Source: Blastocladiella emersonii ATCC 22665
Lineage: Eukaryota; Fungi; Blastocladiomycota
Direction of reading: 5' to 3'
Assembly (NCBI GenBank): GCA_025594325.1
Contig: JANHCV010000012.1
Location: 372,001-436,000 of the forward strand
Length of the DNA stretch: 64,000 bases
This document shows, in pieces, positions 25,366-63,517 of the stretch (the stretch's first letter is position 1; every line of letters starts with the position of its first letter). The notes beneath the pieces were generated by a model, which did not search any database, had not been told where the DNA came from, and worked only from the letters and a program-made list of their open reading frames with translations. Position numbers and translations under genes: made by a program.

Positions 25366-25900
25366 TCAGCCTTGCGTGACGGTTAGACCGCTGATCGTTT
25401 CGCTTGGGTAGAGTGAAGAAGCGACGATGAGAAAGTGGAGGCGGGACAAGGTCCTTGAGCAGAGCAACGACCACATCCGACTCGCAAGTTCTGCCAAAGG
25501 ATTACGAGCGACGCGTTCGTGGGGAGCGCCTTGACCAACGTAACGAACCATGCGGGTTGTTCCTGACGCGGGAGTCCTCGAGTTGCGGCAGGAAAGCGCC
25601 TGAGCGTTCTCAACCGTGATGTTGTTCTCATGAGCGACAAGAGCCGCCAGAAAGTACGGCCGACGCGTCTCAAGCATCGCGAAACACCCAGGTTCGCGCT
25701 GACAACTGTTGAGCTTCAGTCGAATCAGTTGTTGAGGCAAGTGTCGAGCAAGGCGGGCCTGAGGTTCACGAGCGTCCGCGAACGACCAAGCCCAGTGAGC
25801 GAGCGCGGAACCGAGCGGAAAAGAACATTTGCGTCCTGCGCGCTACCCAAAGCGTTATCGAACACGTCGAGACGCTTCAATGGGTGGTGGAACCGGGGTA
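25366..25900 (-). pseudogene. Degenerate LRR fragment of the F-box/ankyrin/LRR family
   Basis: Broken frames encode PLKRLDVFDNALGSAQDANVLFRSVP and QQLIRLKLNSCQ..ENNIT, collinear with LRR-2. Confidence 0.7.
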
Positions 25901-27283
25901 CAAATCCGTGAGAGTCAGCGGGAGGCATGCAGCCAACTGCTTGAGCCCCGAGTCGCTGAGCTTCGCGCCGGCGAGGCTCAGTGACGAAAGTCGAGGCCAG
26001 CAGCCGTCCGCGAGAAAAGGGACACATGCGTCCGTGGCGTTGATCCGGTCCAAACGTAGAATCCGCAAACGAGAAGCAGTTCCCTTGGCAAGCTCGCGGA
26101 GCCCCTTGTAACCCAATGGATTGCTGCTAACGCTCAACTCTTCGAGATTCGGAGGAAGGTGGCGCGCGAAGAGCGCGGCCTCGTTGCTCGTAAAGTTGTT
26201 TGAGTTGAGGCGAAGAATTTTCAAGGTGAGCGGGAGGCCTGGGACAAGTACTGCAACACCCAATGGCGGGAGCTCGCAATGAGAGAGGGTCAGTTCTGTG
26301 AGCTGGCGCGGTAGATACTTGGCAAGTAAATCTACGCGGTCGGCATCGAGCTGCGCGCCAGCAAGGTCGAGCGAGGAGAGCATGGGTGGAAGCAAGCGGA
26401 ACAAAACCTCGGTGTCAAGCACATCGCCAAAGTCGTTGAATGAGAGGTCCAGACTCTCCAAAGTAGGCGGGAACGGCGAAGTATGGTCGATCCGGCCAAT
26501 TTGCCAGCACCCACACTCACCCAGTTCCGCGGAAGCTCGAGCACCTTGACGGACTTGGGAAGCCGCATCGCGCCAAGTGTCGTGAAGGTAAGGTCGCAGC
26601 AGTGCAAGGCCAAATACGCAACGTTTGCAGCGGGATCGGCCAGGGCGTCCGATATTTCAGCGATGCCGGCCTTGGTGATCCGCATGTGCGCGCAGTACAC
26701 GTCGTTGATTGAGCCATCACGCACGTCGGGAAGCATTCGTTTGAGCACCTCGTCGCCTGGCGGATATGCCCCGCACTCGAGGTCCTACAAACCACAGTGA
26801 GTATGCTGCACTAGTCGGAAACAACGTTAAATTTTGACTTACATAAGCTCGTTCATCAATGTGGAGTTCGCTCTCCTCCCCTCCTCGTCCTCGACACAGG
26901 TCCTGTTGAAGTGCACGTGGACTGTGAACCCGACCATGCAGTTGGGTAGCGGAAGCTCCGTGTGACGCCTCCACCAATCGAGCGACTTGTACACAAAAGT
27001 AGCGTCGGTGTTTGCGTGACTCGTGTACTCGAGTGGGCGCGTGGAGCGAACCCAAGCCTCAAGTACGTTGATGCGGCCCGTCGCGCTAGCGTAGTCCATG
27101 GAGATTGACATGGTATGGTCCTGGATCGCTCGATGGACGAGCGGAGCATGGGCGCGGGGCATGACGCGCGAGTATCGAGACATCGCGATGACGTCGTCGG
27201 GGTCGTGCGACCGGACCGCAAAGCAGGATCCAGTCGAGAACAATAAGTGGCAATGCAGGAAGTCTCGTATTCATTGGATTCAT
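25877..27283 (-). pseudogene. F-box-like/ankyrin-like/LRR gene copy 1 (frameshifted)
   Basis: Clear paralog of 30263-31744; 2-bp deletion near 27222 and 1-bp offsets near the intron donor (intron 26785-26842) and near 26495. Confidence 0.8.
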
Positions 27284-27377
27284 GGTGTGTGTTTGGGGTA
27301 CGGTCCGCTGGAGAGTTCAGTGCTGACAAGCGGCGCCAGGGAAGGCAAGCGCCATGTTGGGAACGGTCAGCTTGGAC

Positions 27378-27398
27378 CCCGTGAGTGGCGCATCGCGT
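27378..27398 (-). promoter_or_regulatory. Conserved upstream block shared by LRR copies 1 and 2
   Basis: CCCGTGAGTGGCGCA identical to 31829-31843, 85-95 bp upstream of both ATGs, while the flanks are diverged. Confidence 0.45.
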
Positions 27399-27479
27399 GC
27401 TTCAGCAAGTGTAGCCTTTCTATACCCGCTCAATTCGAGTCATATGAGGGCACCAAAACTGCGTTCCATTTGCGAGCGT

Positions 27480-29819
27480 TCAGGCATTGTCGACACCATC
27501 CATGAGCCCGTCACAGGCCTCGTCGCGCTGCTTGCGCGCGCGCCGCTGCAGAGTCGTGAAGTGGGTCGACTGATTCACAACGACGCCTTTGCCCCGAACT
27601 GCCGCCGATCCGACGGCGCACGCCTCCGTGTCGTCAACCGGCGCGAGTCGGACCACGCTCGTTGGGGGCTCCGTCGGCAGCGCCACGAGCGCGAGCGTCG
27701 TTTCCTGGAGCAAGTCGATCTTGGTCGGCCCGTTGGCAATCGTGTTGAACGCCGTGTCGCCCGGCCGGCGCGGCACGAACGCAAACTCGTACATGGTCGC
27801 GATCACCGCCGAGTGCAGGTTGCCCCAGTTGAGCCCGAACGCGAAGAGCAGGACGGCGAGGAGCGCGACGAGCGAGGCGACAAGCTCCCACACCTCGACG
27901 CCGACCACCGTCTGGACAAACAGCTGTGGCCCGCCGGGCAGCTCGTACGTCGGCACGCTCTGCGTCTCCTGCAGCCACCCGCCCGAGTTGGCGAGGTTGA
28001 GCAGCGTGCGGCCCCACCCGTCCGTACTCCCGACGCCGACGGCGGGAGACGACGCGGCGGAAGCCTTGCCGCCACTGGAAAAGTACGTGTTCTTAACGGC
28101 CGAAAGCGCCGTGGTCCACGTCCACGGGCGCGACCCGTTCTGGACGTTGAAATTGTCGAGACACTGCACGGACATGGGCTGTGGCTGCGGTGCGAGCTGG
28201 ACGGCGCCGACGAGATCAATCAAGCTGTCGTAAAGCGAGCCGCCCGAGTCATCGGTCTCCCACGCGGTCTGCGACGTGTTGAACTGCTGGATGCGGGTCT
28301 TGCACACCTGCGCGCCGGCGAGAAAAGTAACGAGCGGAACCGGGTTCCGCGCGCTGATCGAGTTGAGGAAGAAGCGTGAGGAAGCCGAGGCACCGCTCGC
28401 TGAAAGCGTGCACGACTTGAGCTCGCGCTTCGGGTCGGCGCCCTTGGCCGCCAAGTCGCCGAAAAGCGTGAAGCGCGACGTGTTCTTGTTCTCGGGCTCG
28501 GGCGACGAGACGCCCGGCTTGAAGACGCCGACCGACTGCTGCGTCGTGTTGCACGCCATGGAGACGCGCGTGCTGAGCGCCTCGCGCAGCGTCGAGTCCT
28601 GGTACTTGGTCGCGTTCCAGTTGAAGAAGTCGGACGCGACGGCGAGCGCCGTGCGCTTGTCCGTGGGCGTGCCGCTCGACTCGGAGCCAAAAGTCAAGAA
28701 CTCCACCGTCAAGTTGTTGAGCTTGCTGACCGTCGTGTGCGCGAAGATGGCCACCGAGTACCCGACGGCGGCCCGCGACTGGTACGGAAGGTACTCGGCC
28801 GCGTCGAGGAAGAACATGGTGCCCGAGTTGCCCGGGACCGTGTTGTTGACGTCGCCGGGCGAGACGAAGATGGGCGGCGCGCCCTTGGTCGCCTCGTACT
28901 TTTCGGCAAACCACGCGTCCACGTCTTCGGGAAGCAGGCCGCACTCCATGGTGTACCCGATCGCGTCCTTGCCCTCGGCGATGACGCCGCTGATGGGCCG
29001 GCGCTGCATCGCGAGTCCGCCGCCCGCGTCGCCCGTGGCACTCGCGAGGTCGCTCGACGAGTCGGACGTGTAAGCGTACGGCACTGGGACCGTGACGTAG
29101 AAGTTAAGCCAGCCCGTCTTGGATCGGGAAACGAGTTGGAGCACCGAGAAGAACTGCTGGAACCCGAACGTGTTGTACCGGCGCGCGTTGAACTGGACCG
29201 GGACCGGATAGACGAGCGAGCCGCGGTCGACGCCCAGCTTCGTACCGTCCATGGGCTGCACGGGGTTGGGCGCACTACCGCACGCGCCCGGATAGAGCGT
29301 GGCAAGCGAAGCGTCAATGTCCGAGAACGAGCCCGCGGTCCGCAGCCACGCCGAGTCGGTATCCGGGCGAGGAAGCATCGAGTTGAGCACGCCGAGCATC
29401 GCGTCGCGCGGCATGGGCCGGCCCGTGACCAGCGTCGGGATAAACTTGCGATCGGTCGGGTTGCTGGGGCGGGAGAACACGAGACGCATTTCGCGGCGGT
29501 CGCGTATGGCGCCGAAAGCAAACGAGAGCGTGATGTCGACGATGGTCGCCGTGGCCGAGAGGACGAAGAGAGCGAAGACCCAGCCGAGCTTGGGCCAGCG
29601 ACTGCTGCTGCCGTCGGCGCGGCGCCACTGGGTGGCGGCCTGGAACACGGTCGAGACAGCAGCGGCGGGGAGCGAGAGACTGGACAGAAGGAGCAGACCG
29701 GGGCGGCGCGAGAAGACGAACTGGTAGACGAGCGTCGCGAGGGCGCTCGAGGCGATGATGCGGGTGGCCGTGGCCCACGCGCTGAACTCGGTCAGGCCGA
29801 GCAAGATGGGCGGCGGCAT
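27480..29819 (-). CDS. Hypothetical membrane glycoprotein (two N-terminal TMs, large ectodomain, one C-terminal TM)
   Basis: Intronless ORF; hydrophobic stretches at the N-terminus and at WELVASLVALLAVLLFAFGL; sequons NNT, NLT, NAT, NTT, NTS x2, NGS. Confidence 0.75.
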   Translation of the reverse strand: MPPPILLGLTEFSAWATATRIIASSALATLVYQFVFSRRPGLLLLSSLSLPAAAVSTVFQAATQWRRADGSSSRWPKLGWVFALFVLSATATIVDITLSFAFGAIRDRREMRLVFSRPSNPTDRKFIPTLVTGRPMPRDAMLGVLNSMLPRPDTDSAWLRTAGSFSDIDASLATLYPGACGSAPNPVQPMDGTKLGVDRGSLVYPVPVQFNARRYNTFGFQQFFSVLQLVSRSKTGWLNFYVTVPVPYAYTSDSSSDLASATGDAGGGLAMQRRPISGVIAEGKDAIGYTMECGLLPEDVDAWFAEKYEATKGAPPIFVSPGDVNNTVPGNSGTMFFLDAAEYLPYQSRAAVGYSVAIFAHTTVSKLNNLTVEFLTFGSESSGTPTDKRTALAVASDFFNWNATKYQDSTLREALSTRVSMACNTTQQSVGVFKPGVSSPEPENKNTSRFTLFGDLAAKGADPKRELKSCTLSASGASASSRFFLNSISARNPVPLVTFLAGAQVCKTRIQQFNTSQTAWETDDSGGSLYDSLIDLVGAVQLAPQPQPMSVQCLDNFNVQNGSRPWTWTTALSAVKNTYFSSGGKASAASSPAVGVGSTDGWGRTLLNLANSGGWLQETQSVPTYELPGGPQLFVQTVVGVEVWELVASLVALLAVLLFAFGLNWGNLHSAVIATMYEFAFVPRRPGDTAFNTIANGPTKIDLLQETTLALVALPTEPPTSVVRLAPVDDTEACAVGSAAVRGKGVVVNQSTHFTTLQRRARKQRDEACDGLMDGVDNA

Positions 29820-30262
29820 GGTTGCGATTGCATTAGCTTCGTGGTGAGAGTGCGGCGAGTTGATGCTCTCGTTCGGGGAGAGAGAGCGAGAATCCGGGGC
29901 GCGGGGCAGGCCGCAGCGAGCGCACCGGATTTGCGTTCGTCCGGCGAGCGCCCGCTGTGCCCACGTGGCGCCGCCGCGCGACCCCGGATCCCCTTGCGCT
30001 AAGGTTAGCGACGAATTCGGCAGGATGCTTATCTCTCGCGAGTCCCTGCAACCTGGCATCGGCACGAACTTCATGCATTCTCTCCAGCCATGCGTGATGA
30101 GACGAACGAGTAGGAGAATGGGAGAACGCGAGGATGGCGGACGCGCGTCCTTGTCAAGCTCACGTCCAATGAGCTCGTCCCTGCGACTGCCTGTGATGTT
30201 GGGGCTCACAGAGAAGGCAAAAGAGATCTATTTACCCGCGACGCAACGACGCGAGCGCGCGT

Positions 30263-31744
30263 TTACCTCGTCGTAATATGAAGCCCGGGTCGTACGGTTC
30301 CGATGAGGGGAGCAAGGTCGCGAGTGATGCCTGTCGCGGGATCGATGCAGTTGCGAAGGAAGAGAAGCCTGACTGTTGGCGGAAGATTGCAAAGCACGCG
30401 CTGAACACCTGCGTCGCTGATTGTTGCGTTGGAAAGCTCCAGCCGCTTGAGCCGAGCCGGAATGCGGTCCATGAGCGCGGCCACGCCGGTATCTGTCGCA
30501 CGAACCGAGCCCACGAGCAAGTCCGTGCGACTCGGGCCGAATGCGCTCGCAAGCGTAGCAACACCCTCGTCGCCCAGAGGATTCCGCCAACTGAAAAGGC
30601 TTTCAAGCTGCAGAGGAAGGTGCCGAGCGACCTGCACTGCGCAGTCGGCCGTGATGCCGTTGTTGGTGATATCAATCTGGGCGAGGGTGCGCTGTAGGCG
30701 CGGCACAAGTAGCGCGGTGCCTTGTGGCCCAAGCTCTCACGAGTTGAGCCGTATCTCCTTGAGCTCCTGCCGTACGCACGTGTCGAGGGCCCGCGCGTAC
30801 TCGCCGTCAAGCTTGGTCAGAGTGAGATTGATCGAAGCAAGTGATGGAGGAAGCGAGCGGAACAGCACCTCCGAGTCTTGCACGGTACCAAGGTTGTTGC
30901 TCAAAAGATAAAGCGTGTGAATGCTCGGCGGGAATGGGGTGAGACTCGGGTCGTTCAAAAACTTGGCGGCACCGACGCCCGCCCAATTGCTTGCAATCTC
31001 GAGCGATTTGACCGAGTTGGGCAGCCGCATCGCGCAAAGTACTTCGAAGGTGAGATCGCAATAAGTAAGGCTCAAGTCGTGCACCGTGACAGCCGGATCG
31101 GCCAAGGCGGGTGCAAGAACATTTGCGCCGGCCTTGGTGATGCGCTTTTCTGTGCAGCAGAAAATGGTACCGGAACTGGTCCGCAGATTGGGAAGCTGGG
31201 TCGCAAGGTGGGCATCGCCAGGAGGATGATCGCGGAGCTTGAGTCTCTACGGATCGGTCTTGAAGCTAGTGAGTGTGTTGGTAGCTACTGCCATTAGACG
31301 AGTGAGAAAACGTACGAATGATCGGTCTTCCACGAAAGGGTTAGCCCGTTCCCCGCAAATTCCGTTGAAATGAGCCTGTACCACGAACCCGACCTCACAC
31401 TCGGGCAGCGGGATCGCCGTGTGACACCGCCACCAATCAAGCGAGCGGTAGAGTCGAGAAGCGTCGGTGATGGCGCGGCCCGCATATTCGAGCGGGCTCC
31501 CTGACCGAACCCACGCGTCAAGCACATTGAGGCGGCCCGTCTCACTGGCCTCATCTATGGAAATCGACATGGTGTGGTCCTGGATCGCGCGGTGCACGCA
31601 AGGGGCGCGGTCGCGCGGCATGACGCGAGAGTACCGCGACCTGCCGTGGACGTCGTCCCGGTCGTGCAGTCGGACCGCGCAGCACAGGATCCGATCGAGA
31701 ACAATAATTGGCAATGCAGGGGGTTCCATATTCATTGGATCCAT
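30263..31744 (-). pseudogene. F-box-like/ankyrin-like/LRR gene copy 2 (in-frame TGA)
   Basis: LPIIVLDRIL, YSRVMPR, IDEASETGRLNVLDAW..LDWW, intron 31247-31315, LP..L..L.L..N repeats; single TGA at 30737-30739. Confidence 0.8.
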
Positions 31745-32116
31745 GGTGCGTGTATTATGCGACTGAGGGGAGAATGTCTCGTTTTAAACGCCACGCGTTC
31801 GGGTGACGTCAGGCTATGGACCCAAGATCCCGTGAGTGGCGCAACGCGTCTCGCACAGTAGGCGCTGTGGAACGCGTGCCGTTGCCACCCGCAACAGGAC
31901 GCATCAGAAACCAGAATGATGTTGCTTCAAAAAGCGCATGCACGCATGGAGCACCAATATATTCACAGTTCAGGTCATGCGGCCAGTCCGCGAACTGCAG
32001 CGCGTGGCCGAGACCAAAAACAGCGAGTATCCGCAGTTTCGACATTTTATGCATCAAAAAAACTTAATGCATTGACTCGATGATATGCAGTCAGTTCCGA
32101 TGAATGCAAACTAGGG

Positions 32117-33262
32117 ATGAGGGGCGTCGCGACTCGCACCAGCGTGAATCCGGCGGCGAGAGCTCCCGCTCTCTCATCACCCGACTCGCCTTCGACGACC
32201 ATGACGACTGCAACGAAAGGAAATAGCCGCAATGATGATTCCCTGACGCTCAGTTGCGATCTTTCTCTTCCCTACAGCGTCATCGAGGTGATTCCCAGAC
32301 ACGCTGTGACCTTGCATGACCCAAAGGAGACTCGAAGCTTTCGAACGTACTTGCGTGTCCTCCCGCGCGCTCACGCTCCGAGTGTTTGCAAGGCCGTTCT
32401 TCGCCGCGCGACCTACTTCTCGATAGACAATGCGGGCATCTTTGGCCGGCTTCCCGTGCTCAAGGAGTGGAAGCGGTCTGGCCTCCGGCTCAAATACACG
32501 GACACATCCCTCTCCCTTGCGTGGTGCAACCGATCCTGCGACATTGTCGAGTGGTGGCGAGAGTCTGGCCTTGAGCTGAAACTCCACCCCGATTTTCATG
32601 CTGCTGGCCGCGCCTTCATAATGCCATGCCAAGAGTCTGTGCCTCGCGAGTTTCGTGGACACGTACTCATAGGCGCTGCCGACCTGCACCTTGCGGAGCG
32701 TTATGACGAGCTTGTGTCCGGAAAACTAAAAAAGCTGCGTCTCGAGTCGATGCGGATTACCCACGGCGGTGCCGAGCTGCTCGCTGACGTCCTCGCACAC
32801 CGAGAGAGCAAGGTGACGGCCATCGAGTTCTACGATTGTGCTGTGACTATGCATCTCCTCGAGGCTATACAGATCCCTGCTTCAGTGCGAACTTTGAAGC
32901 TCGAGCGAAACCCGCTCAATCACCAGTTTGGCGAAGTGTGCCCTTCATGGCTCCACGACGGGCTCGAGAAACTTTCGCTGGAACATAACACGTATGGATT
33001 TGGCGATCAGCAGCTTGATTTTTCGCCCTTCCCCTCGACTTTGCGCAAGCTTCGCATTTACTATGCTCAGTTTTCCCTTTTTACCGCGCTCTCGTTGATT
33101 CGCGCCCTCCCTGTGCAGCTCGAAGCTTTTGACATTGACGAAGCGCGACTGCCAAACGAGGCGGTCAAAGAGTTCGCGCTGCGACTTCCCGAGCTGGCGA
33201 GGACTTTGACGATCGCGCTGCGCGGCGGTCGCTCCAGAAACACTGCCCAAACTGCAAACTGA
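32117..33262 (+). CDS. F-box-like/ankyrin-like/LRR gene copy 3 (intact ORF)
   Basis: LPYSVIEVI, YLRVLPRAHAP, IDNAGIFGRLPVLKEWKRSGLRLKY..VEWWRESGLELK, then LRRs; start at 32117 or 32201. Confidence 0.8.
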   Translation: MRGVATRTSVNPAARAPALSSPDSPSTTMTTATKGNSRNDDSLTLSCDLSLPYSVIEVIPRHAVTLHDPKETRSFRTYLRVLPRAHAPSVCKAVLRRATYFSIDNAGIFGRLPVLKEWKRSGLRLKYTDTSLSLAWCNRSCDIVEWWRESGLELKLHPDFHAAGRAFIMPCQESVPREFRGHVLIGAADLHLAERYDELVSGKLKKLRLESMRITHGGAELLADVLAHRESKVTAIEFYDCAVTMHLLEAIQIPASVRTLKLERNPLNHQFGEVCPSWLHDGLEKLSLEHNTYGFGDQQLDFSPFPSTLRKLRIYYAQFSLFTALSLIRALPVQLEAFDIDEARLPNEAVKEFALRLPELARTLTIALRGGRSRNTAQTAN

Positions 33263-50472: not shown

Positions 50473-52175
50473 TCAACGAATAAGCTCATGCATTCCAGGA
50501 TACCAGTTAATAAGAATTGCACAACACCAGCCAGTTAAGTTCCCAGTCAACACTTGAAAGCGAGCAAAGCTTGCCGGGAAACCATCAAGAGCGTCTGGAT
50601 CAAGAGCTGACGGGTTGTTGCGTCTCAACGAGAAATCTCTGAGTCCTCTTGGAAGAAACTTGCCAAGGGTTTGCACTCCCACGCGGGTAATCAAGTTGTC
50701 ACAGAGCTGCAGTACAGCGACCGTGTGCGGAAGCGCTGGTGCAAGGGCCTGATAGCTCGGTCGTCAAGATTTGTAGACGAGAGAATCATAACCTGAGGAG
50801 CCACGGGTATGTGGAGCGCGAGAAGCATTGCTCCTTCGGGTCCCAAGTCGGCACTGTAGAGATTCAGCGAGACTAGAGTGGGTAGGATTCGCGGAATAAC
50901 GGAAAGCACGCTGTGTCTCGTAGGTTGACATCCCATAAGGTCCAAGTTTCTCATGCTTTGAGGTAGCATTCGGGCTAGCGCCACGACTGCCTCGTCCTGA
51001 GACGCCAAGAACCGGAGCGAGAGATGGCCAAGTGAGAGCGGAAGCGCTGTTCCAAAAGAGCTGACCAGATATTCATTCAGGATTTCTCCCTTGAGTTCGA
51101 AAAATGTGAGGGGAGCTGGAAGTGCACAAGTAGCCGCTTGGATTGTTTTGGGCGACGCCGCTGATGCAGATGAATCATGATCCTGGGAGATAATTAGCTT
51201 GCCGACAGACAAACTTTTCAACGAGTCTGGAAAAAGCGGGAGGAATGAAACAAAACACTGGTCAGTGATTTGGTTTCCACGCAACCCAAGCGTTGTGAGG
51301 CATGGGGGAAGCACGCTAACAAGTTGGCGGAGAGTACGATCGTTGAGGCGGCTATTTTCGACAGTCAACGACTGCAGGGTTGCGGGCAGAGTTGCAAAAA
51401 GATACGGAACAGCGGCGGAGAGGTTTGCCGAGGAGACATCCAGGGACTGGAGGCTCGCGGGCCAGGACTTCGGAGTGAGATGCGCCGCTGACGAGGGGAC
51501 GCTGCGCATCCAGCAGCTTTGAAGCTCTGCACAACGTAAAGATGACGGAAGTTCAAGAGCCAGGAGACAAGGAAGGTCGATCGTGCATACTGAGACGTGA
51601 ATAAACTCCAATTTCTGCAACGGGCTCGACATGGCGGCGTTGAGAGCGTTGATCCCTGTCATAGAGATGGGGAGCTGCTCAAGCCATTGCGCGTCGGTCT
51701 CACCTGCCGCAACAGCGGTGCACATTTCGGCGATACCCGCGTCAACAGCGACAGGCCCTTCGCCGTCTGTGGTACGGCGCACTCCAAGCGCAACGTGTGC
51801 ATCGGGCTCTTGCTCCCGCTCGTCAAGCCAGAGCTTCAACTCGTGGGCGTCGAGCGAGCCTCTATCCCGCCACCACTTGAGCGTTTCGAGATTGCGTGCG
51901 TCGATAGCGTAGCCAAGCGCGTCGTGCGAGCAGCGGAGCGGGATTCCAAGCGCTTTCCACTTGTTGAGTACTGTCATGTTGCCGCGCGCGGTGGCACTGT
52001 CAAGCGAGACACTCGGGCAGTGCGTCAAAAGCGCGTTCTCGATGCGTGGAGCCATTGCCCGCGGCAGAACGCGCGCATAGTGCAAGAACTGGTCCGTGTC
52101 GGCCGAGTCGTCGAGCTCGATCGCATAAACAAAAATTCGCTCGAGCACTTCAGGAAGGTGGAGTGTCTCGAGCAT
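50473..52175 (-). pseudogene. F-box-like/ankyrin-like/LRR gene copy 4 (single late frameshift)
   Basis: LPEVLERIFVYA, YARVLPRAMAP, SLDSATARGN..LNKWK, LKWW, many LRRs; the LRR continues in another frame after about 50748 (ALAPALPHTVAVLQLCDNLI). Confidence 0.75.
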
Positions 52176-52399
52176 GTTGCATGAAGTTTGCGTTGCGTTC
52201 AGTGTGGTGAGTGGAACTGGGGCTGGAGCTTCACTCGATGTTGCGTGAAACGGTGAGGCGGAGCGGAGCGCGTGCGACCTGAAACACGTCACCTGATTGA
52301 CCGACGCGTCTCTCAATGTCTCAAATCCGGTCCGCGCGGAGAGCACGCGTGCTAAAACTCGCGCGGGCGTGCTAAAAAAATGACGGGATATAAATATGG

Positions 52400-54491
52400 T
52401 TACATATTTCCCCAGAACTTGTCCGAGTTATCGTAATACGTTGGGAACAGAGGGAGGAGAAGGGCGCGTTTGAGCTCGCCTTTCATGACAACGAAGGACG
52501 CGGCGGTGGCCGAGGCAGTCCTCTCGCTTTTCTGCTGCGGGAATTCGTTGATGACAGGCTGCGAGTGATCGACCGATACGGCGTGACAGTAGTCGAGATA
52601 CTCGCCAATGGCTTCGCCGTGCGCCTCGAGCCGGGTGATCAAGGGAAAGCGTTGTTCGCAATGGTAAGCGTACGTCTTTTCGGCCGCATCGAGTAGCTTA
52701 CGCAGCCGTTGAACCTCAACGCGCTTGGCTGGGGAATCTGATTTGGCTGGGAGAGGCGGAAAGTACACGTAGCTGACATCAAGCGCGGGCGTGATACCTG
52801 CAGCGTTACCTTGCGGAGGAATCACGGCGGCGATGTGAAAGTAAATGACTGCTATCGGGCCGCGAGGTCCGCTGCCGTCGAGGCGCAGAAAACACACGCC
52901 GCCATGCTTGGTCGCGTAGTGGAACAGCTCGAGTACAAGCAATTTGAGCCCGACGGCGCTCCACGCACCAGCCCGGCCCGGTGGCGCTGGCCCGATTATA
53001 GTTGAGAAACCGCTTGCTGCAGTAGGAGCTTCCTCAAGTGTAAGCGTCTTGCCCCAGTACCTGAAAGCAGCCGTGACAAGGAAGGTGGAGACCCGCGGAA
53101 CGCGCTTGGGATCGGAAAATGACGCGAAACGGGGAATCAAGGGACCAAGGCCAAGCGCGGGAGCGACCGCAAGCCAGACCTTGCGGATAGTCACAATAGC
53201 AAGGTGGGCTTTGGCATCAACTGCGACTTTGGTCGCGTGCCCCGGGTACGGCAGCTGATACGTTTGCACCTTCCCATCAACAAGCAGCGCAACGGCTCCG
53301 CGGTACTGGACGAGATCGTGCTCGGGTACAAGCTTGATGGGAGTCTTGCCATGACTTCGGGGCAGTTTGAGTCTGAGCTCCGCATGGACGTCGCTCACGT
53401 CGCAGACGCTCAAGATGGCAAGGCACGCCAACGGTACACGAGCAGCAGCCCGTGATGCGGCTAACTGAGAAGCTGCACCAGCCGCGGATGCCATGATCCC
53501 ACGAAGCGCACACTGCATGTTGGCAAAGGAGTCCACGGTCATGACGACCGGGCTAGAATCGTTGGCATCGCAGCGCAGCTCGTCGCTGATTCGCACCCAC
53601 TCGACTTTCGCATCAGCGGGTTGGTGGTGCCCAAAAGCCGGGCACGCCCAGAGCGAGGCGTAGGCGGCTAGTACGTGTCGTGGTTCAGCATACCATTCCA
53701 CTTCGATGGTGCCACCAGTCTCGTCGTGCGAGTGGCGGATCGCATCGTAGTGTACGGTCTCGTCCTCCCATATACAGTGGACACGGATGACCGAGACGGA
53801 CGGCCCGTTCCACCAAGACTTCTCGCACGGTGCGCCGACAGTGCTTGCAGTCGCTATTGGTACACTCCGAGTGGGGCTCCTCGACGCCAGTCACCCGGCG
53901 GTGCTCGAGCGCGAGCGAGTCGAGCATGCGTCCACGCGCATCCACTTGCTCGGTTAGCTGACGAGGGGACTCGCCGAGCTTAAGCCAGCGCGACCAGCAA
54001 CCGCGGAGCGCCTGCAAAGTCTTTTCGTCGAGAACTTGCACTGGTGAAGCAGGAGAGAGCCAATCAAACTGGATGCACTTGCGAAGCAAATCCAAGCACT
54101 CAAAGTGCGAGTGCAGCTCGAGCTGTTCCGAGAACCACAGCTGACTCATCATGACGTAGAGTACCTCACGGTGCCGAATGGAGGCAAACATGAGTGCATG
54201 TAAGATGAGGAGCGAGCGGGCGATCGGCTCAGGGCGCAGGTCGCTGAGCGTGAAAGCCATGGCCGCGCGCGAGCCCTTGCGCCTTGCCTCCAAAAGCGTG
54301 TGCGCGACCGAGCGCAAGTCATGGAAGCCGCAGAGGAGCGCGCTCAGCTTCCGCTCACCGATTCCTGTGCCGTGGTAAAGAAAGACATCGGAGGCGCACG
54401 AGTCGCGGAACGGGTCGAAGCACTCCGCAGGGTCGGCGAGCAGGACTGACGCGCTCGTCTGCGTCGGCATAAAACAAGACGCTGAATTCAT
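52400..54491 (-). pseudogene. DUF4470-like gene split across two frames
   Basis: LLCGFHDLRSVAHTL, FTLSDLRPEPIARSLLIL, QLWFS resemble DUF4470; the second ORF is in another frame with no clear intron; no MYND finger seen. Confidence 0.5.
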
Positions 54492-62287: not shown

Positions 62288-63517
62288 ATGGAACTGCCAA
62301 CTGGATGCATTAACGAGACTTTGGCCATTTTGCTTGACCACTCGCTGCAATCCAGCGCTTCGACCAACATGGAGCCCGCCTCCCGCCCACGAATCAATAT
62401 GCCGCACGTGCTCGAGAACATCCTCGTTCGCGCCGTGTTTGCGCACAACGACCCGTGCGACGTGGCCGGCTTCACACAGTACATGAAGGTTACCTTTGCT
62501 GAGGTTATCCCCGCAGTCCATTGCGCGGTCATCCAGCGATGCCTCAAGTTCCACGCGAATAACGCATTCGCAGCGGGTCGGGCCGCGGTACTCGAGAAGC
62601 GACGTCAGCTCGGCCTTTCGCTTCGCGCTACGCGCACTGCCATCCAAGCGGCGGCAAATATTCGCTCGCTTGCCGTCTTTGAGTGGCTTCGGGAGACCGG
62701 AGCGAGTTTGGATGCGAGCTGGCTGAACCCGCACGCATCCGCTGCACTTTACGGAGCTGTTTATGACCACCCGGCGAGCACTCCAGGCGACGCTTTTGTC
62801 CTAGAGAATCGAATCGTGACGCTCGAGGCGGCTCGCAATCTTGGTTTGACGTTGGCTGCTCCGAACACCAGCGTTCGCCAGCTGCGGCTCACTGCTTGCA
62901 CCATTGATCTTGCGCGACTGGTAGTACTTCGCTTTCCTGACAGCTTGGCCAAACTCGAGCTGGACCTGTACTGGTTGCCCCGCACTATTTCCGCAGATTC
63001 GTTCAAAGGTTGGCGATGGCCGCCGCACCTCGAACATCTCAAGCTCGCCAATATCGTGTTTGCCTCGACGACTATGCGTCCGCTGCTGCTGAAATTTCCC
63101 GCGACCCTGACGACATTTATCTTGGATGCATGTAACCTCGGCGACGACGGCGTACTCCGTGTCATCCAAAAGCTCCCGTCCACCCTGACAAGCCTCGGGC
63201 TCGTCGCTTGCGAAATCACGGGCAGCGGACTTGAACGCGTCCTTGTGCGGCTCCCAGTTTCTCTGACTAGCCTCGACCTCAGGTCAAACCGACTCAACTT
63301 CTTAGTTTACGAGAAATCGCGATGGGCGTTTCCCAGCCCGCTCACGCACCTTGTTCTCGACAATAACAGATTCAAACCGACGGGGATCGTCCCGCTTGGA
63401 AACGGAGTCCCTGCTGGACTCCAATCTTTGAGTCTCAAGTCCTGCGAACTGTTTTCCTGGGACCTTCATTACTTGCGAGCGCGGCTTCCCGGGCTCAAAA
63501 ACCTGGAACTTCGGTGA
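62288..63517 (+). CDS. F-box-like/ankyrin-like/LRR gene copy 5 (intact ORF)
   Basis: MPHVLENILVRA..HNDPCD, ankyrin-like ANNAFAAGRAAVL..FEWL, then LP..LT.L.L..C/N repeats; start at 62288 or 62369. Confidence 0.8.
   Translation: MELPTGCINETLAILLDHSLQSSASTNMEPASRPRINMPHVLENILVRAVFAHNDPCDVAGFTQYMKVTFAEVIPAVHCAVIQRCLKFHANNAFAAGRAAVLEKRRQLGLSLRATRTAIQAAANIRSLAVFEWLRETGASLDASWLNPHASAALYGAVYDHPASTPGDAFVLENRIVTLEAARNLGLTLAAPNTSVRQLRLTACTIDLARLVVLRFPDSLAKLELDLYWLPRTISADSFKGWRWPPHLEHLKLANIVFASTTMRPLLLKFPATLTTFILDACNLGDDGVLRVIQKLPSTLTSLGLVACEITGSGLERVLVRLPVSLTSLDLRSNRLNFLVYEKSRWAFPSPLTHLVLDNNRFKPTGIVPLGNGVPAGLQSLSLKSCELFSWDLHYLRARLPGLKNLELR

Follow-up and report, generated by a model that had tools for sequence, protein, structure and literature searches.

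A conserved head, WW-type ankyrin repeats and a variable leucine-rich repeat tail in a large protein family of Blastocladiella emersonii

The fungus Blastocladiella emersonii carries a previously undescribed family of adaptor-like proteins in which a conserved head and WW-type ankyrin (ANK) repeats are followed by a variable tail of leucine-rich repeats (LRRs). We analyzed this family in a stretch of 64,000 nucleotides (nt), positions 372001–436000 of the contig labelled C4 (hereafter, the window), and by genome-wide searches of the 32.65-Mb, 21-contig assembly of strain ATCC 22665. An initial annotation of the window had described a large, clustered, fast-diverging family with broken members, built from a conserved head and a variable LRR region, and this description holds: there are at least 150 head matches genome-wide. 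We tentatively interpret the family as soluble modular adaptors, greatly expanded in B. emersonii, that may serve as substrate receptors of the Skp1–cullin–F-box (SCF) type.

Architecture, copy number and selection

The family members are built in the order of a head of ~57 residues, two WW-type ANK repeats and LRRs of the ribonuclease inhibitor type. To describe them, we used a family profile of 553 positions, derived from an alignment of 33 intact paralogs and run against the six-frame translation of the window; broken copies were scanned piece by piece rather than as joined exons. The AlphaFold2 model of one window copy (copy 4 below), made with the family alignment, reached a predicted local distance difference test (pLDDT) score of 88.3 and a predicted template modelling (pTM) score of 0.87. 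It places head helices at residues 7–21, 27–34 and 43–52, paired ANK helices up to about residue 130, then a linker and, finally, 12 LRR strands.

The header motif noted in the initial annotation is real: among 34 heads, L15, A18, Y33, R35, V36 and P43 are each at least 90% conserved, and the mean column identity is 45% in the head vs 23% over the whole protein. The units with paired tryptophans, annotated as ankyrin-like, are true ANK repeats, as positions 58–102 of the head-plus-ANK profile match a DARPin at E = 2.6e-7, even though a Pfam scan of 16 members gave no Ank match. The LRR assignment likewise stood: four of the five window copies (1, 2, 4 and 5) and most of the paralogs scanned score above the Pfam LRR_6 cut-off. 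In a profile search of the PDB, the tail matched ribonuclease inhibitor (E = 8e-43), a GALA protein (8.5e-32) and FBXL2 (1.7e-16), as well as the LRRs of NLRP proteins, and by fold (Foldseek, E = 9e-10), it matched ribonuclease inhibitor, NLRP, COI1 and FBXL17. A word-indexed protein search with the whole-family profile returned only generic LRR proteins (NOD2-like, NLRP3-like and plant kinases) and missed the B. emersonii paralogs; the same search with the head gave no match, which, given the missed paralogs, is not evidence of absence. The Pfam scan of 16 members found no NACHT, NB-ARC, TIR or death-fold domain, and the copy 4 model consists of head, ANK and LRR only. We rejected a reading of the members as secreted effectors, as they begin directly at the head helix with no leader ahead of it.

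How large is the family? A head-only profile of 58 positions gave at least 150 matches in the genome, all at E ≤ 4.5e-16, with 439 first-look candidates, and a 110-position profile behaved in the same way. By the 110-position profile, 32 of the best 150 head matches fall on contig C2 (1.7 Mb), 24 on C20 and 13 on each of C4, C5 and C21, and the 5-Mb contig C1 holds only 6. The genome has roughly 10,000 annotated genes (PMC9730499), and a family with at least 150 heads, and perhaps ~400, may be the largest that this model zoosporic fungus has; the genome paper mentions no F-box, ankyrin or leucine-rich repeats (PMC9730499). The assembly used here measures 32.65 Mb vs the 34.27 Mb reported for 21 contigs (PMC9730499), and C1 is 5.14 Mb at NCBI.

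Several family loci are exact mirror duplicates. Pairs with the same score on opposite strands occur at C4:909k/978k, C11:825k/876k, C20:1532k/1604k, C18:365k/634k and C6:682k/893k, and such equal scores point to large inverted segmental duplications. A locus on C15 (L041; C15:2553400–2562500) has three family genes in tandem. Two of these genes have 100% identical head DNA but LRRs that differ at a synonymous divergence (dS) of ~1.5, which points to gene conversion or recombination having recently affected the 5′ end.

Selection was evaluated by Nei–Gojobori counts in seven pairs of intact paralogs, with the site classes projected from the strands of the structural model. The overall ratio of nonsynonymous to synonymous divergence (dN/dS) was ~0.3, indicating that the intact members are maintained by purifying selection. 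By site class, dN/dS was as follows:

Head: 0.15–0.33, even at dS >1
Ankyrin: 0.15–0.32, with 0.85 in the gene-converted L041 pair
LRR core leucines: 0.11–0.50
Other LRR positions: 0.26–0.36
Predicted concave-face x positions of the LRR: 0.29–0.75

The head is thus the most constrained part and the LRR concave face the fastest changing, with an amino-acid identity of 15–38% on the concave face vs 35–54% in the rest of the LRR. In none of the site classes and in none of the seven pairs did dN/dS exceed 1. The initial annotation had seen an arms-race signature here; the concave-face values, all below 1, do not establish one. It had also set against its own proposal the case of a small family conserved under purifying selection: the family is large (at least 150 heads), yet its intact paralogs are indeed under purifying selection.

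Window copies and the linker intron

The family profile recovers five copies in the window, including every piece claimed in the initial annotation. Their features are as follows:

25369–27283, minus strand: copy 1, a pseudogene, with profile matches at 25901–27222 and 25576–25755
27086–27283, minus strand: open reading frame with the header helix of copy 1, in its own separate frame
26842–27243, minus strand: head and ANK of copy 1
26785–26842, minus strand: putative linker intron of copy 1, 58 nt, GTAAGT...TAG
26335–26784, 25880–26461 and 25369–25842, minus strand: LRR pieces of copy 1 in three further frames, the last being the annotated "relic"
30263–31744, minus strand: copy 2, profile match 30350–31744, with start codon and head intact
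31247–31315, minus strand: putative linker intron of copy 2, 69 nt, in-frame, GTACGT...TAG, holding the first apparent stop
32117–33262, plus strand: copy 3, an open frame of 381 amino acids, profile match 32243–33256
50476–52175, minus strand: copy 4, profile match 50608–52184, with an open frame of 494 amino acids at 50691–52175
62288–63517, plus strand: copy 5, an open frame of 409 amino acids, with its head from ~62378 and profile match 62369–63511

The pieces of copy 1 are collinear in different frames, covering family-profile positions 25–115, 152–239, 244–447 and 461–520, and they are separated by several frameshifts. The last of them had been annotated as a separate relic next to three copies, with two more copies elsewhere in the window. 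The five copies were found, but the relic is best read as the 3′ end of copy 1 in another frame, with no extra locus, since it is collinear with the piece covering positions 244–447 and lies 146 nt downstream of it.

The other copies are broken or shortened in different ways. Copy 2 has one reading frame with two stops, of which the second is a true nonsense codon at 30737–30739, inside an LRR; family-profile positions 310–405 are missing from this copy. Copy 3 has a head (~32252–32422), two ANK units and about seven LRRs, adjoins the 3′ end of an ABCG transporter gene and stops at family-profile position 349 of 553; against Pfam, it gave weak matches only or none. Copy 4 begins at a Met (52175) immediately ahead of the header, and a 1-nt frameshift near 50752–50765 puts its last two LRRs (50476–50763) in another frame. 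An assembly error is an unlikely cause of this frameshift because the site lies outside any homopolymer run. Copy 5 stops at family-profile position 423 of 553, with no LRR past its stop. Consequently, all five copies fall short of full length (copies 1 and 4 frameshifted, copy 2 with a nonsense codon, copies 3 and 5 short at the C-terminus), and most of the cluster is made up of copies that are decaying or shortened. The earlier count of three disrupted copies among five near-full ones is correct as to copies 1, 2 and 4, but the stops in the linkers of copies 1 and 2 appear to be intronic.

Many copies, chiefly on C4, break at one and the same place, between family-profile positions ~120 and 152. 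The gap there measures 54–69 nt and has a donor of the form GT(A/G)CG(T/C) or GTAAGT, a CTSAC-type branch site and a YAG acceptor. These features argue for a short GT..AG intron at the ANK–LRR junction, conserved in many C4 copies. When it is removed at a consensus donor, copy 2 and the loci L003, L010, L011 and L022 each read through as a single open frame; on the other hand, removal fails to restore the frame in copy 1 and in L008, L012, L018 and L023. Part of the apparent decay would therefore be an intron. In a roughly unbiased sample of loci (L001–L030), ~7 are single open frames, ~9 are split at the intron only and ~6 are clearly broken.

The relaxed codon bias reported in the initial annotation was confirmed: the GC content at third codon positions (GC3) is 0.61–0.77 in the copies vs 0.86–0.93 in three neighboring genes, one of them the flanking ABCG transporter gene. 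None of the three open frames of the window turned up in an exact-match look-up of a protein collection. Carriage by a transposon was considered and rejected: the sole DNA repeat of at least 80 nt in the 64 kb is the head of copy 1 vs that of copy 2, which are 74% identical, and no repeats of at least 80 nt flank the window copies. Between copies 1 and 2 lies an open frame of 909 amino acids (27480–30209, minus strand) that has a GC3 of 0.86 and no Pfam match and resembles an ordinary gene. Beside copy 4, an open frame of 433 amino acids (52400–53701, minus strand) has a family-like low GC3 (0.64) and no Pfam match; it may be a further gene that belongs only to this low-GC island.

Identity of the head and competing explanations

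Beyond the observed architecture, copy number, conservation gradient, intron and breaks, we propose how these proteins might work. The three-helix head and the two WW ANK repeats would dock every member onto one common partner, most likely a Skp1-type protein; the head would then be a very derived F-box and the proteins SCF-type ubiquitin ligase receptors. The concave face of the LRR solenoid, variable among paralogs, would select different targets. The common partner, its Skp1 identity and the ubiquitin link are what we infer here. On this reading, the family expands through tandem and segmental duplications together with gene conversion at the 5′ end, and it loses members by frameshift, nonsense mutation and truncation, with the five copies of the window mostly on the losing side.

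Could the head be an F-box? Several features point in this direction. The head is placed at the extreme N-terminus, a Pro follows its first Leu in 21 of 34 members, and its helix 1 keeps the hydrophobic spacing of F-boxes (P+3, +7, +8 and +11), with the Glu displaced. For two heads that share only 41% identity, all of the top named clusters in the ESM Atlas were F-box, at scores of 0.76–0.82. The heads of chytrid ANK-WW proteins aligned with the genome's F-box profile in helix 1 (hhalign, 65%, 17 columns), and Pfam F-box-like was grazed, at 20.8 bits, by 2 of the 110 database proteins scanned. The genome also contains three loci with the Skp1 C-terminal domain (L071–L073; one canonical and two divergent) and eight Skp1_POZ matches, and its SKP1-like loci lie at C15:2012k, C1:792k, C1:3199k, C15:360-414k, C1:816k and C17:740k, some of them as mirror duplicates. 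In most fungi, one Skp1 plus Elongin C would be expected, which is fewer than the SKP1-like set found here.

Other observations weigh against an F-box. The F-box identity given to the head in the initial annotation was not confirmed by any direct test: the 16 members scanned with Pfam had no match to an F-box model at E ≤ 1; none of the 40 above-cut-off PF12937 matches in the genome coincides with the 150 best head loci; and hhalign of the head with 20 of the genome's own F-boxes gave a probability of 4–5%. The head profile matched nothing among PDB sequences at E ≤ 10. With the head-only model (pLDDT 85), Foldseek found no match below E = 4 and no F-box protein, and the top 50 matches by VIA-align were generic helical repeats at Z 4.2–5.4 without an F-box chain, although small domains score low Z anyway. 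The best-conserved residues of the head (Y33, R35, V36 and P43) are not known to have an F-box counterpart, the Pro behind the first Leu is missing from 13 of the 34 members, and ESM Atlas scores below 0.9, such as those above, count as a lead only by that tool's own grading. We put the chance that the head truly binds Skp1 somewhat short of even; the F-box/SCF mechanism is nevertheless the likeliest single reading, though unproven.

The relatives of the family bear on this question. Scanned in full with HMMER, a set of 1.84 billion representative proteins yielded 3921 matches, 1188 of them at E ≤ 1e-10, which are mostly arrays of WW-type ANK repeats; Pfam Ank_4 was present in 104 of the 110 database matches scanned. 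Among the best 150 matches, from which the range was read, those that contain the head are either B. emersonii head–ANK–LRR proteins or LRR-less proteins with a head and an ANK array from Blastocladiomycota (Allomyces macrogynus KNE64573.1, A. javanicus KAJ3357586.1, Catenaria anguillulae ORZ32920.1 and B. britannica KAI9223998.1). The occurrence of head–ANK proteins in Allomyces, Catenaria and B. britannica indicates that the head–ANK module is Blastocladiomycota-wide, and, provisionally, the LRR fusion is found only in B. emersonii among these best 150 matches. In two B. emersonii gene models, KAI9179536.1 and KAI9188824.1, a TEX47/BLUF-like region or a SART-1 domain comes after the head and ANK-WW; these could be genuine fusions, or separate genes merged in the models. 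Many of the top WW-ankyrin matches (e.g., P0021, P0025, P0027 and P0033) are AT-rich metagenome proteins with N-termini unlike the fungal ones; these may be giant-virus proteins, as had been suspected in the initial annotation for 32400–32590.

Among the alternatives, the strongest, which we consider doubtful but serious, is that the proteins are adaptors or scaffolds with no SCF role. The head would then be a family-specific N-terminal cap or an extension of the ANK stack that binds some other common partner or self-associates, and the proteins would act with no recruitment of a ubiquitin ligase, for example as inhibitors or scaffolds in the manner of ribonuclease inhibitor, RanGAP or CARMIL. 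The negative outcome of every direct F-box test agrees with this, as do the top LRR matches, which are ribonuclease inhibitor and NLRP and not FBXL, and the position of the head, which is always contiguous with ANK, also on the ANK-only Blastocladiomycota proteins. On the other hand, the ESM Atlas features favor an F-box for two diverged heads, the family shares its N-terminal LPxxI-type helix with the chytrid ANK-WW proteins that graze F-box models, and the SKP1-like gene set is enlarged.

A more specific form of the SCF proposal seems unlikely. According to it, B. emersonii would possess a private SCF-like system in which hundreds of receptors, their heads too far diverged from the F-box to be recognized by sequence models, pair with the extra, diverged SKP1 paralogs and not with canonical Skp1; these receptors would have arisen by fusion, over an intron, of the Blastocladiomycota-wide head–ANK module with an LRR domain. 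If true, such a system would be a fungal counterpart of the F-box/SKP1 co-expansions of nematodes and plants, and it might serve non-self recognition.

We regard as improbable that the family is a diversifying repertoire for immunity or non-self recognition, in which LRR sensors that lack a NOD domain, with or without ubiquitin ligation, are engaged in an arms race with viruses or parasites. The very high copy number, the clustering and the pseudogenes would suit such a repertoire, as would the likeness of the LRRs to those of NLRP and NOD2 and the LRR-face positions that evolve 1.5–2 times faster than the rest. However, relaxed constraint alone also predicts faster change at exposed strand positions, dN/dS does not reach 1 in any site class or pair, and none of the NACHT, NB-ARC, TIR or death-fold domains is present in the 16 members scanned. 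Least probable of all is that the family is for the most part dispensable DNA, multiplied through segmental duplications within low-GC compartments poor in genes, with most copies decaying and little organismal function: this would account for the five of five window copies that are broken or truncated, a GC3 far under that of neighboring genes, exact mirror duplicates such as C4:909k and C4:978k and the concentration of copies on a few small contigs (C2 and C20), but not for the dN/dS of ~0.3 across all domains of intact paralogs (the head remaining low even at dS >1), the age of the paralogs (mean identity 23%), the lack of flanking repeats of at least 80 nt around the window copies or the conservation of the head in other genera.

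Comparison with known receptor and adaptor families

What would follow from these readings? Should a Skp1-type protein be the partner of the head, the family would illustrate how strongly an F-box can diverge, and an early-diverging fungus would join the few lineages with an explosive co-expansion of receptors and SKP1. If the head does not bind Skp1, it would be a new partner-binding module conserved across Blastocladiomycota. Either way, the junction intron and the ankyrin-only relatives make a clear case of domain fusion followed by amplification.

The proposed SCF-type adaptors share with F-box/LRR proteins (FBXL2, Skp2, FBXL17 and TIR1/COI1) and with the Ralstonia GALA effectors a layout in which a short helical module at the N-terminus precedes a curved LRR solenoid. 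F-box/LRR families are large and fast evolving, and in some lineages they include many pseudogenes. Compared with the F-box/LRR proteins and GALA, however, the head of the B. emersonii family matches no F-box model or structure, and two or three ANK repeats stand between head and LRR; its LRRs are also nearer to ribonuclease inhibitor than to FBXL. The combination of an F-box-type module with ANK repeats is known from Legionella AnkB, in which an N-terminal F-box is followed by ANK, and from the poxvirus ANK/PRANC proteins, both of which hijack or use SCF ligases. These are pathogen effectors with F-boxes recognizable by sequence and without LRR, and the PRANC box is C-terminal.

The tail of the family has its best matches, by sequence and by fold, in the LRR domains of ribonuclease inhibitor, NLRP and NOD2. 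Those proteins have neither the head nor the ANK repeats, and the NOD-like receptors among them carry NACHT, which the family lacks. The N-terminal half, on the other hand, has true relatives in the head–ANK-WW arrays of Blastocladiomycota, in which the same type of head (Y-x-R-V/M-x-P/R motif) stands directly ahead of WW ankyrin repeats; these proteins differ by their long ANK arrays and the lack of an LRR. The chytrid ANK-WW proteins are likewise relatives of this N-terminal half.

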